In this document: positions 50,167 through 63,416 of the stretch, piece by piece | How positions within the stretch are numbered: the stretch's first letter is position 1 | Layout: each line of letters opens with the position of its first letter | Assembly (NCBI GenBank): GCA_028023455.1 | Contig: JAQFVV010000007.1 | Location: forward strand, 19,716,001-19,780,000 | Source of the DNA: Epiperipatus broadwayi | Taxonomy: Eukaryota > Animalia > Onychophora | Length of the DNA stretch: 64,000 nucleotides | Direction: 5' to 3' | The notes under the pieces: model-generated | The model's input: the letters and a program-made list of their open reading frames with translations, nothing else | Databases searched by the model: none | What the model was told of the DNA's origin: nothing | Translations under genes and position numbers: made by a program

Positions 50167-50400
50167 ACTACTACTACTACTACTACTACTACTACTACTA
50201 CTATTACTACTACTACTACAACTACTACTACTACTGCTGCTACTACTACTACTACTACTACTACTGCTACTGCTGCTGCTGTTGCTACTGCTACTGCTGC
50301 TACTACTACTACTGCTACTACTACTACTACTACTACTACTACTACTACTACTACTACTACTACTACTACTACTACTACTACTACTACTACTACTACTACT
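50167..50400. repeat. (CTA)n = (TAG)n array with GCT variants, 3' of LINE copy A
   Basis: Seen directly. Confidence 0.98.
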
Positions 50401-53400
50401 TTTAAAACAGCTTTATTAAGTAAAAATGTTATACATATTGAAAAAAATAGGTAACTTACATTATTTTATTAGTTACATAGCATTTTACAGTGAAATAACA
50501 GGTATTGAAGTGGGAAAAGGTCAGATAATGGGCAGGTTTTGTGACAATAAAAAATAAATAAAGTTCTTTTTCAGGTAATATTTTTCCGTATGTAATTGTG
50601 GGATTGTGATTAGGTTGTTGGCATCTGAATTGATTGCCAAGTGTCTGTGAATAGTCCAAATGGGGCAAGTATTTGGTCCCTCTTCTTTATTGCTTGTAGT
50701 TTATTAAGGTAAATTGTTCTGTATTTGCGAGAAGTGGGGTTGAATACAAAATGACAGTGGACAAACCAGAGAGTGAAAAAAAGGTATGTGTGTATTCTGA
50801 TTGAGGTGAAATTACATGTCTGTATTGCATTAATTAACAACAATAGTATGGTATCATTACTCCCAGTGAGCATTGCAATTAGTTCTCTATAGATGTTAAG
50901 AGCAAGACAGTCAGTGATTATATGGTCAATGGTCTCCTCATCCCTATGACAAAGTACACATATTGGATTGAGGTTGGCATTTTTCATTCTTGTTGTCAGA
51001 AAATAATTAGTAGGTAAGGCATCAAGATTAACTTTACTAAGAAGTCAAGATATTTTGGTTCTAGGTGCCAATATTTGAATTTTTGTACAAGTGACTTATT
51101 TGATATTGAAAGACTACTGCTATGGCAATGAGTGGAAGAGTTTGCATTTATAATTTGATATGCATCCCAGTATTTTAATTTATTCGCTGTTTGATCATTC
51201 TGCTTATTGTACATATTTATTAAAACTAAAAGGTTATGAATGAATTTGTTACTAGTGGGTGGAGGTGTATCTGTTGGAACTATTGGAATTAAAACTTCAC
51301 CAAACTCAAAGTTGCTGATAATTTTTTGAATAGTGTTATATGCCTTTTGAAAAAAAAAGTAGTAATGCTGTGTAGTGAAAGGGCATTATCTTTGGAATGT
51401 TTTTGTAACTTGTTGATACTAATGGATACAGTTTTTTTGTTCCAAATTAACTGTGTGCACAATGAATTGATCTTGTGAATAAATGAGTTGGTGAATTTAA
51501 TAATTGGGGCATAATAATTAATTTTAGGAAAAATTAACATATTGATCAAAGAAATTTTACTATGAATTGATAAATATGCTTTAGTTAAAGAATTGATTAA
51601 TTTATTGATTGAATTTAATAAGTTATTTTGTATTAAAATTCTGGCTCTATTTGTGGAAAGGTGGAAAGGTATTCCAAGAAAAGGGTGGGGGGCATGAGAA
51701 TTTATTGTCCTTATTGGTGAGCCTGTGAGTAGGGACCACACAACCATTTTTCCTGATTAAATTTCAATTGATATTGTGTTGAATATTTTTCTAATATTTT
51801 ATGTAAATCTGGTAACATTTGTTTTGAGGGGAGGAGGACTATTACATCATCCATGTAGGTGAGATGCTTAATTGTTTGTCTAAGTGTATGGGAGTACACA
51901 CCCAGGAGCTTTCCTTCTATTTCTGCAAGAAGTGGATTAATAAAAGTGATGAATAGAAGCGAGCTGAGTGGAGAGCCTTGTGGTATAGAATTATGTGGAA
52001 TGAAAGAAGGTGATGTTTTTCCATTGAGGGTTATTTGTAGGCTTAGCGAGTATATAGATTATTGGTGTTGGAATGTTGTATTTGCCTATTAAACAAAGAA
52101 GGCTATCAACTGGCACAGAGTAAAATGCTGCTTCTATGTCTAGCTGAACTGCCACTGGTGCTGCCTTTCTTTTGGTTTTAATATCTTCCTGTATGATTCT
52201 AAGTAGCATTAGTGCTTCTGGTATGGAGTTGCCTTTTTTGGCAAATTGGAATTTAGACAGATGCGAGAGTATTAAAGGCTGAACTTTGTCCTTAATAATG
52301 GACTCAATGATTTTTATTATGAGTGGTGACATTGAAATTGGCCTTAAATTGTGAAGTGGAGATGGCTGCATGGACTTTTTTAAAAATGGAACTATTGAAA
52401 CTGGGTATAGTAGATGGATATTGTGTTCTGTTGAGACAAAAAAGTCAACATATTATATATTATAGGAATAGTGTAATAGTTAAGATGGTGAAATAGAAAT
52501 TTCGGGATGGCATGAAGTCCTGGGTGTGCATGATTTGGCATGCTGCTTATTTTTACTTCAATGTCTTTTTTGGTGATACTATGCGATTTAATTGATATCC
52601 CAAAATAAAATTGACCCAGATTGGATTTAGGTTTTTGTTGAAATCGTGTTTTAAAGTGATCTAATATAGGGAAAATCATATTTTTACCTGTGATTATATG
52701 ATCTGCTATGAGAATGGATGATGGGGTTGGGCTTTCACTACTATATCCCAGAGCCCAACAAATGTAGTTTGTCGTCCAGTTGTGGGTGTTTCTAAGATAT
52801 AGTTTAGCTTTTTTAATTGATATATAGTTTGCCAGTATGAATTGTGTGTCTTTATATTCCTGCTTAAGCTGAAGAACAGTGTTTATTGACTGTGGATTGG
52901 TTGTTGTGGAATTTAATTTGTCCCTTATCAATTCTAGTTTATTTAATGTTTTGGTGGGTGGTGGATTTCTCATTGTGTAACTTTTGATTGTAGTGGTGAG
53001 GATGTTGATATAAGTAAACCAGGCTTCTGCTGGGGCTAGAGATAAAATGTTTAATCTGTTCAAGTGTATATAAATTTCCGACAATACAGCTTCTGGCACA
53101 TTGGCTTTAAGTAGAAGACGAGTAGTGTTGGATAATGACAGGGTTGGCTGGGTATATGTAGGTAGGCTGATTTCAACTTTTAGAGCATTATGGTCTGAGA
53201 AAGGGACTGGATGACGTGAAGGTTTTATTTGAAAGTGGAGTTCAGGTGAATAAAAGAGTAAATCTATTAATGTTGAATGCTGTCTATTGTAAAATGAAAT
53301 TGCATTTGAAGGAAAGAAACTATCTGGACTCTTAAGTTTCTTGTTAATATATTGCAAATATTTTCTTATGAAATCTTCATATGTCATGTTGAAATCACCT

Positions 53401-55754
53401 AGTATTATTGTAGGGTGTGGGTTTGTAGATAGGTGTAGGTTAATGGTGTTGATCAGTTGATGAATTAGTGTAGATTTATTATATAAGTACAGTGATATAA
53501 TGTTCAGTTTAAAATCTTTATTATGAAGTGACAATATTATCATATGCTGGTCACAGTATAATATTTTAAAGGATTGGATTGAAGAGGTGTGGTGAATCAA
53601 AAAACTAATGCCTGCCATTGAGTAGCCGTTGTACTAATTGTTCTGATTTTCCTGTGGGGTGTTGTCTTGTCCAATACAGTTCCTGTGGTGAAGCTGTTGA
53701 GTTGACATTCTGTTTATTAGATTTGTGTTTCTTCTTGACTGGTTTACAAGAGTCTGTTAAGCTTTCAGGAGATTCTGCTGTTTCTGTGGTATCCATTTGA
53801 GTGGTTATTTGGTGTGAATATTTATTGATTTCAATTTGTTGTTTATTTTTTTAAGCTTAGTTGTTTGTTGTATTCTGTAGTTGCTGGGCTCTTCATCACT
53901 ATAATAAGAGGAGGCCACTTCTATTTCTTGTTCATCATTTGAATCTGGTGTGGAATTATCTGTGTTTAAGCTACTTGTTATTTGCATCTGTGTGTTGTTT
54001 AGAGGACATACGATAGGTATATTATCTGGGTTTAATAAACTTGCCAATTGCATTTGTGTGCTGTTTAAAGAGAATGGGGTGGGCATTTGTTCTTCACTTG
54101 TCTTGATAGTTTTATCACTGACTGAGGGCATTGTATTTGAAAAAACTGGACATTGGTGCCTTTCACTTGATTTGAGGCCGCAATTGCCACATATTCTTTT
54201 AGGACAGTCTCTTATCACGTGTGTGTGCTGTTTACAGGAAAAACACTGAGGAGGTGTGCCTCTAAAGGTAATAACAAGCAGTAATTTACCTGTGGAGAAT
54301 ACTGTTGGTATGTCTAATGCAGTCACATTTTTATTTAATTGTATATTAAATGTCACTCCATACATTCTAATTGGAATTGGTGTTCTTTTCTCCGTTAATT
54401 AAAATTTGTTATTTTTCCGTACTTTTCCAATAGCGATTGTAAATTTGCTTCCGTGAAACCAATACGACAATTTCTAATCATGCCTTGTGTCACAAGAGCG
54501 TGCTCTGTATCGATATAGCAAATAATTTTGTTATTTAAAAATTTGACGTGCTTTCTAAAAATATCTTTTTGTGTCTTGTTGTGAAATTCAAAACACAAAT
54601 ATCTGTTATTGGGATGGTATAGTATTTGGTGGATGTAACTCCATAATTTCATTTGTGTTATTTTGTCATAAAATTCATCTATTGGGAATTTATATAATTC
54701 GGCGTCCGCATTTGTTACCACCATTATGAGTGATTTATCGCTATAAAAACTTTTGAACGACGTTAATAGCGGTAGTGGAATTGTTTTATTAAAATTATTA
54801 GTATATTGGTCATATAATTCTTGTGTAATATAATGAAGTTGATCTTGGTGTATATCGTTGTGATGTTATTGATCCTCAGTATCGTTATCGATTCCCATAA
54901 GCTCTGCAAAAGACTCGGTGTCCGACTGAACATAATCCATCGACACGTGAAGATCGGCCTTTACAGCTCTAGCATACGTATTGTTATTATTTGCGTGTGA
55001 ATTTAGATTATTGTGGTGGTCATTTGATTTTTCTCTAGTATTTTGCTGAAGTATGGGTGAATCTACTGAATAAGAGCTTTGAGATGCGCTCCTATCCAAT
55101 GGTGGAGAATTGGTAGGGTTTGCTTCGGGCTTTCTCAGGTATGGTGTATTTATTTTGTCTAATTTTTTAAAACTTTCCGATTGCACATATAGTGCTGTAT
55201 TTGTTTTCTCGGTGTCTTTATTTGCATTATTGGAATAATTTTCATTTGATATCCGGGTAGGAGATATGGTTTTCCTTTCCAAGGGTGGAAAATTAATGTT
55301 GTTAGTCTCAGGCCTTCGAATGCATGTTTCTGCTTTACCGGTATTTTTTCCCAATAATTTTTCTTTCATGATATGTGATTCAAATGCTGATTCAATATTT
55401 TGATCACTAGGAATTTGATCTGGATTGTTTGATTCTATTATAATTGAACTATTGATAGCTTGAATGAATGACTGAATTTGTTTTTGATACTCGGCAGTAC
55501 TCCCAATTGTATTGAACGCATCGGCCATTTTACATTCTTACAAATGGCGCTTGCCTGGACGTTATTTTTTAATAATAATCAAAACTCTAATTATAAATGA
55601 TTTTCTCTTACCTTTAAGATGTGATAATGTTCTTCTTACTAAATCTGTCACAAATAACATCAATTAGGTCTATTACAACGGAAAAAGATAACTAATATTT
55701 CAAAGTGAAAAGGAGCTAGATATGTAACAGTCTATCTGCATGGATGCCATCTTG
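50401..55754 (-). mobile_element. Full-length Tx1/L1-clade LINE, copy A (inactivated)
   Basis: Colinear with copy B (roughly 90% identical by eye). It has several stops and frameshifts, and a ~370-bp deletion removes the ORF1 C-terminus and the ORF2 endonuclease N-terminus. 5' end CAAGATGGCATCC; 3' end AATAAAGCTGTTTTAAAA. Confidence 0.95.
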
Positions 55755-63120: not shown

Positions 63121-63194
63121 CCCCCCCCCCCCCCCCCCCCCCCCCCCCCCCCCCCCCCCCCCCCCCCCCCCCCCCCCCCCCCCCCCCCCCCCCC
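63121..63194. repeat. 74-nt poly-C (poly-G on the element strand)
   Basis: Seen directly. Confidence 0.9.
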
Positions 63195-63416
63195 TGCTGC
63201 TGCTACTACTACTACTACTACTACTACTACTACTACTACTACTACTACTACTACTACTACTACTACTACTACCACTACTACTACTACTACTACTACTACT
63301 ACTACTACTACTACCACCACCACCACTACTACTACTACTACTACTACTACTACTACTACTACTACTACTACTACTACTATTACTACTACTACTACTACTA
63401 CTACTACTACTACTAC
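63195..63416. repeat. (CTA)n = (TAG)n array with GCT/CCA variants
   Basis: Seen directly. It is the outer boundary of the LINE array. Confidence 0.98.

Follow-up and report, generated by a model that had tools for sequence, protein, structure and literature searches.

Few long interspersed nuclear elements (LINEs) are known to target microsatellites, and a TAG-directed lineage would add a new target to that set. Those described in the Tx1 clade are Kibi (TC) and Koshi (TTC) of teleost fish and the crocodilian Tx1 families (TTCC/TTTC); Waldo (ACAY) and Mino (AC) of the R1 clade and Dong (TAA) of the R4 clade are also microsatellite-targeting (PMC4494074, PMC3812793). Target specificity has been assigned where the same sequence type occurs in more than 20% of the flanks on both sides of a family's copies (PMC4494074). 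The means by which the APE endonuclease or the RNA tail of such an element picks out a simple repeat are not understood (PMC3812793). The DNA analyzed here is a 64,000-nucleotide stretch of the Epiperipatus broadwayi assembly (contig JAQFVV010000007.1, positions 19,716,001 to 19,780,000), the whole of which is called the window below. It contains three LINE copies, designated A, B and C, lying among long arrays of the trinucleotide TAG. The arrangement is probably the work of a LINE family, assigned to the L1/Tx1 group and carrying a (TAG)n tail, that integrates preferentially into (TAG)n tracts and builds head-to-tail arrays. In practice, the target tracts would mostly be the tails of earlier copies of the same family.

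As with Kibi, Koshi and the crocodilian Tx1 families, the element has an APE-type endonuclease, falls in the L1/Tx1 group and sits in a microsatellite, and in both cases related lineages occupy different repeat units (PMC4494074, PMC3812793). It differs from them in its target, which is TAG instead of TC, TTC, TTCC or TTTC, and in its reverse transcriptase (RT), which is at most ~ 33% identical to any of the 1.84 billion representative proteins scanned. Dong, Waldo and Mino likewise sit in a microsatellite and carry the same repeat at the 3′ end (PMC3812793), but they belong to other clades, whereas the second open reading frame (ORF2) of the present element is nearest to L1 and Tx1, ahead of jockey and R1. 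The initial annotation of the window had named no LINE targeted to TAG, and none tied to TAG, CTA or GTA repeats was found in the full-text literature, a search to which Repbase and the screen of Kojima and Fujiwara 2004 were outside scope. The element is therefore likely to represent an APE LINE directed to microsatellites, with a repeat unit new to this kind of element, and its L1-group lineage is very divergent; the behavior is known and the TAG target is undescribed in the literature searched. It does not amount to a new principle.

The arrays were mapped across the 64-kb window with Tandem Repeats Finder, a pattern search and a regular-expression scan. Four arrays were found, each reading (CTA)n on the plus strand and thus (TAG)n on the minus strand, which is the strand of the elements. 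A 15-nt TAG pattern with at most one mismatch gave 323 matches in the window against 0.01 expected from shuffled sequence. All runs of at least four TAG units fell inside the four arrays and on one strand only, in agreement with the initial annotation, which had seen no other long TAG array. Together the arrays cover 1.7% of the window. Along the minus strand, the locus opens with unique DNA and continues with (TAG)n, three CAG units, a run of 74 G residues (G74), copy C, (TAG)66 and copy B; next come (TAG)155, copy A, a (TAG)n array of ~ 78 units, (TAA)5 and again unique DNA. The components are as follows.

63203-63416, minus strand: upstream-most (TAG)n array, ~ 71 units with TAA and TGG variants, no element body 5′ of the array
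63121-63202, minus strand: three CAG units followed by the 74-base G run, separating the TAG array from the truncated 5′ end of copy C
62222-63120, minus strand: copy C, an 899-bp 3′ fragment, 5′-truncated, of a second subfamily
62022-62221, minus strand: (TAG)66, pure, tailing copy C and flanking copy B on its 5′ side
56221-62021, minus strand: copy B, full length, 5801 bp
55755-56220, minus strand: (TAG)155, tailing copy B and flanking copy A on its 5′ side
50401-55754, minus strand: copy A, 5354 bp, decayed
50166-50400, minus strand: tail of copy A, with a pure stretch of 28 TAG units adjoining the element, a degenerate distal half of TAG/CAG/CAA/TAA, (TAA)5 and finally unique DNA

Array starts had been placed at positions 50167, 55755, 62022 and 63195; of these the last needs correction, as that array begins at 63203. 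Copies A and B begin with identical letters (CAAGATGGCATCC...), one base (T or C) past the last TAG unit, which bears out the earlier observation that the two share a 5′ start directly after TAG repeats. At the other end, copies A, B and C all finish in ...TTTTAAAA(G/C) with TAG repeats immediately after. TAG is thus present at the 3′ end of all three copies and within 86 nt of the 5′ end of all three at this one locus; since even the truncated copy C is tailed in this way, TAG behaves as the tail of the family. The 5′ flanks of A and B adjoin TAG directly and that of C adjoins the G run and then TAG, with unique DNA at none of the three. The claim that each copy is bounded by TAG on both sides accordingly stands for A and B and fails on the 5′ side of C, where G74 (63121-63194) and the three CAG units intervene. 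The G74 run (C on the plus strand) lies in surroundings of about 27–30% G+C. It is either an odd 5′ junction of copy C or a local assembly or polishing artefact.

The tails of copies A and B start, on the side of the element, with long uninterrupted TAG runs (28 and 99 units, respectively), and the variants CAG, CAA, TGG and TAA are distal, as would be expected if a newly made tail had been joined to an older tract. Proceeding outward from copy B, (TAG)155 consists of 99 pure units, seven TGG-TAG-TAG units and 37 pure units. The middle part forms a 9-nt periodic block at 55866-55922 between two pure TAG runs and suggests that a variant unit was amplified by slippage or by repeated template copying. 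The upstream-most array (63203-63416) may be what is left of the original target tract, or alternatively a tail-only insertion.

The three elements, which share one orientation, come from two diverged subfamilies, as the initial annotation had reported. Copies A and B are 92.5–94% identical. Copy C is only 66% identical to B at the nucleotide level and 50% at the amino acid level and hence represents a second subfamily; it covers the last part of ORF2, including a canonical zf-RVT zinc knuckle, and a 3′ untranslated region (UTR) finishing in TTTTAAAAG. Copy A carries a 368-bp deletion spanning the border of the first open reading frame (ORF1) and ORF2 together with ~ 12 further indels, and is clearly dead. 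Synonymous and non-synonymous differences between A and B were counted over 1606 aligned codons, with the two wrong reading frames serving as composition controls. The ratio of non-synonymous to synonymous differences (pN/pS) was 0.46 in the true frame (bootstrap 95% interval 0.36–0.58), compared with 0.72 and 0.89 in the wrong frames. Had one dead copy been duplicated locally, a value close to those of the controls would be expected. The lower value in the true frame indicates that part of the divergence between A and B arose in active, selected source lineages, and this signal of purifying selection argues that A and B are separate insertions and not duplicates of one dead copy. Copy C, being of another subfamily, is a separate insertion as well. 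On this sequence evidence, A, B and C are independent insertions and not products of local duplication. With so small a share of the window taken up by TAG arrays, it is very unlikely that two or three elements landed in them by chance and all in the same orientation.

Insertion into TAG arrays with head-to-tail growth, as had been proposed from the first inspection, therefore remains the best reading: a single TAG tract holds, all in the same orientation, three insertions that were made separately and stem from two subfamilies. In its support, all TAG arrays of the window flank A, B and C in the orientation of the elements, and the upstream-most array is free of any element on its 5′ side. 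In the mechanism envisaged, the APE endonuclease would nick the (CTA)n strand of a TAG tract, and the freed 3′ end would pair with the (UAG)n 3′ end of the element RNA. Reverse transcription would begin within the repeat, so that tail length would be variable and tails could grow. The new copy would be flanked by TAG repeats on both sides; each insertion would thus turn one target into two, and head-to-tail arrays would accumulate. We infer the RNA tail, the nick site and the relative weight of endonuclease specificity and tail-target pairing from the arrangement of the locus. The APE endonuclease may have a target specificity for (TAG)n, as the initial annotation proposed; pairing of a (UAG)n RNA tail with nicked (CTA)n explains the data equally well. 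If correct, TAG-directed integration accounts for the origin of long TAG arrays and for the pile-up of LINEs head to tail, which matters for the annotation and assembly of an AT-rich genome.

Several observations weigh against TAG-directed integration. The evidence comes from one locus, and both full-length 5′ junctions adjoin the tail of the upstream copy. The G74 run parts copy C from the upstream TAG array. Read contigs aligned to copy B (see below) inform on the body of the element and not on the flanks of other copies. Finally, the motif AATAAA lies 13–15 nt ahead of the border between body and tail in A, B and C and in a related copy, D, described below (within 50401-50425 in A, 56221-56245 in B, 62222-62250 in C and 4055-4079 in D), while the 3′ UTRs are otherwise barely alignable. 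If this signal were used, the RNA would end in poly(A) and not in (UAG)n. Its position fits neither the model in which the endonuclease reads TAG nor the one in which the tail pairs with the target well.

The alternative that survives best, though it is unlikely, is pure target specificity as in R1, R2 and Tx1L, in which the APE endonuclease recognizes and cuts (TAG/CTA)n, the RNA has no TAG tail, and all the TAG around the copies is left over from a single long microsatellite that existed before any insertion. It corresponds to the mechanism of the initial annotation. The occurrence of TAG to both sides of every copy and the element-free array upstream would be expected under such a history, and AATAAA 13–15 nt before the border fits an RNA that ends there. 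Sequence-specific APE endonucleases are, moreover, known in the group (Tx1L, Keno, Kibi and Koshi; PMC4494074). However, an original tract of more than 1.1 kb would be required, every TAG array in the window has an element, and tails that are pure near the element and degenerate farther away suit newly made tails better than a pre-existing microsatellite.

A second alternative, with still lower probability, is that TAG is a mere 3′ tail made by the reverse transcriptase, in which case the order of the locus would come from local duplication, unequal exchange between tails, or chance. The model for such a tail is the Drosophila I factor, which resembles the present element in having a trinucleotide 3′ tail, (TAA)n, made at reverse transcription. 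Microsatellite tails without target preference are common among LINEs, every copy here has a 3′ TAG array including the truncated one, and A and B are alike enough (92.5–94%) to invite a duplication. The I factor, though, belongs to another clade and is not known to insert into TAA tracts or to form head-to-tail arrays, and the unique 5′ flanks that characterize a tail of its type were found at none of the three copies of this one locus. The pN/pS of A and B, clearly under the out-of-frame controls, the origin of C in another subfamily, the presence of an upstream-most TAG array without an element body before it, and the very low likelihood of several chance landings in 1.7% of the window all speak against a mere tail. 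Hardly credible is an array that is partly an assembly artefact, with repeats and near-identical copies collapsed or wrongly chained: long pure microsatellites are hard to assemble and G74 in a region of 27% G+C looks artificial, but A, B and C differ by 6–34% and so are not one copy laid down three times.

The anatomy of the element was established from copy B, whose parts are listed here.

61795-62021, minus strand: 5′ UTR, 227 nt
59737-61794, minus strand: ORF1, 688 codons, with an in-frame stop at 60766-60768
59703, minus strand: start of ORF2, the first 737 codons of which hold the APE and RT domains
59074-59685, minus strand: APE endonuclease domain of ORF2 (Pfam Exo_endo_phos, E 1e-09)
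57601-58239, minus strand: reverse transcriptase domain of ORF2 (Pfam RVT_1, E 2.8e-29)
56475-57566, minus strand: C-terminal part of ORF2, 363 codons in a shifted frame, with the frameshift within 57493-57566
56766-56933, minus strand: zf-RVT zinc knuckle (Pfam E 4.9e-05, 24.4 bits)
56221-56474, minus strand: 3′ UTR, 254 nt

ORF1 and ORF2 of copy B are separated by a 33-nt spacer. In an alignment with 28 distant relatives, the invariant columns of the APE and RT domains, including GDxN, SDH and YMDD, are kept in copy B, so that both sets of motifs are intact-looking as judged from the alignment. The initial annotation held that only two repairs would reconstruct an active element from copy B. 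That number is too low, since at least a third lesion accompanies the ORF1 stop, at whose position copy A is open, and the ORF2 frameshift: one conserved zinc-ligand position of the zf-RVT knuckle is substituted in copy B and canonical in A, C and D. The zf-RVT score of copy B (24.4 bits) is below the Pfam cut-off of 27.5 bits, and that of copy C (27.7 bits, E 4.5e-06) is just above it.

The ORF1 product contains a C-x2-C-x4-H-x4-C knuckle at ORF1b residues 87–100, which reached an E value of only 0.03 with Pfam zf-CCHC. For the stretch ahead of the knuckle, the Atlas neighbors were ZCCHC3-type proteins with an RNA-binding domain and a CCHC knuckle, at scores near 0.9; a resemblance of ORF1 to the RNA-binding domains of ZCCHC3-type proteins is offered as a lead only. 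The ORF1 of Tx1L is long, with one or more RNA-binding domains and a CCHC knuckle, although this is not a strict definition. The 688-codon ORF1 of copy B agrees with it in its long frame, its CCHC knuckle and a candidate RNA-binding domain. An exact look-up of the ORF1 product found no record.

Two short motifs occur at corresponding places near the 5′ ends. The first bases of B (62004-62021) and A (55737-55754) read CAAGATGGC, and GCGCCATTTG lies shortly upstream of the ORF1 start in both copies (61807-61816 in B, 55541-55550 in A). Both presumably resemble YY1 sites, comparable to the site in the human L1 5′ UTR that sets the transcription start, and by this analogy they are a possible, putative internal promoter. 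A conserved stem-loop at the 3′ end was also sought, and was dropped as a candidate given that the last 141 nt folded no better than shuffled sequences (z +2.1).

The clade to which the element belongs was examined by sequence and by predicted structure. Among solved structures, the best match by sequence was human L1 ORF2p (E 1.5e-19), with R2 at best 2e-11 (PDB). The APE-RT part was modeled from a 29-sequence alignment with a mean pLDDT of 79.5, and a Foldseek search with this model against the Swiss-Prot models returned human L1 ORF2p (3.6e-38, 19% identity) and the Xenopus Tx1 149-kDa protein (3.9e-38, 16% identity) at the top. Lower ranks were taken by loris and mouse L1 (up to 6e-37) and by jockey, BS, X-element and R1 (2e-31 to 2e-27). 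The layout of ORF2, with an N-terminal APE domain, a central RT domain and a C-terminal zinc knuckle, is a feature of the L1 group and is shared with human and other mammalian L1 and with Xenopus Tx1L. Given this layout and the closest matches to L1 and Tx1, the element is placed, by sequence and predicted fold, in the L1/Tx1 group of APE-type LINEs. The Tx1/L1 label of the initial annotation is therefore upheld at the level of the group by the Pfam, PDB and Foldseek results; for the Tx1 clade specifically it is not, as L1 and Tx1 are tied in the fold search. Unlike L1, the element has no poly(A) tail, and its ORF1 has a CCHC knuckle with a candidate RNA-binding domain of the ZCCHC3 kind, in contrast to the coiled-coil, RRM and CTD architecture of mammals.

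Database relatives were all distant. In a protein search across 5.8 billion clusters and a full HMMER scan that covered 1.84 billion representatives, the best true relatives were 25–33% identical in RT, and the lineage appears, from these comparisons, to be remote from all proteins in the collections searched. The top match, from Artemia (E 7e-44), was rejected as a close relative. At Artemia franciscana CM065067.1 (L001, 9343-25421), a single gene model for a 1996-aa protein extends over five tandem units of 3866 bp, every one of which contains an RT fragment, and the score is inflated as a result. JGI metagenome contigs gave no matches in a protein scan or in an exact scan with the 5′ end. 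Distant relatives with the same zf-RVT knuckle carry other types of ORF1. One of them (L002) terminates in AATAAA plus poly(A); in another (L004), no simple repeat was present within 700 nt past ORF2, and the contig of a third (L003) stops 67 nt past ORF2. As the relative with a recognizable terminus ends in AATAAA and poly(A), the TAG tail appears to be a derived trait, although none of the three ends bears directly on the present lineage.

Abundance of the family was estimated by aligning whole-genome contigs of one run to copy B together with 25–30 nt of TAG on each side, a procedure that covers the element body and not the repeat junctions. A total of 1626 contigs aligned to copy B, of which 376 did so at 99% identity or higher and 307 at less than 90%. 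Summed word depth was 2000–9800 across the 3′ two thirds of copy B and dropped to 945 at the 5′ end. High depth that falls towards the 5′ end points to a large, recently active LINE family whose copies are 5′-truncated, and the family has the profile of a young, abundant and 5′-truncating one. It is also present in runs under a second species label and in two probable RNA runs, where presence only was scored.

A related LINE lies near the start of the window.

1144-4079, plus strand: copy D, a related LINE, 5′-truncated and with stops, RT 37% identical to copy B at the amino acid level

The RT of copy D is nearer to that of B (37%) than is any database protein. The 3′ end of copy D is (CAT)9(TAA)n, after which come an 83-bp piece, (TAA)75 and a 5′-truncated D-like fragment (the whole at 1144-4700). 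Copy D thus shares the habit of occupying trinucleotide tracts, with a different repeat, TAA. The coexistence in the window of a TAG-tailed lineage and a TAA-tailed relative parallels the diversity of repeat units seen between Kibi and Koshi. Within one genome, the two can be compared as a matched pair to learn whether the target is set by the endonuclease or by the pairing of the tail. A more speculative extension, which we consider rather doubtful, is that a single, deeply divergent lineage of the L1 group has radiated in this genome into sublineages with APE endonucleases specific for different trinucleotide repeats (TAG for the present family and TAA for D). If true, this would provide a natural series of closely related endonucleases that differ in their three-base repeat targets, and the rules of target recognition by APE could be deduced from it.

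Other features of the window were recorded in the course of the analysis. Ten ORFs were considered as possible host genes in the window, and no Pfam domain was found in them. A degenerate telomere-like array with TTAGGG, TTAGGT and AGTTTTAGGGTT units occupies the internal position 28736-28904. A perfect tandem duplication of 160 bp is present at 22880-23191, with 2.0 copies that are 100% identical and a nested 15-bp direct repeat.

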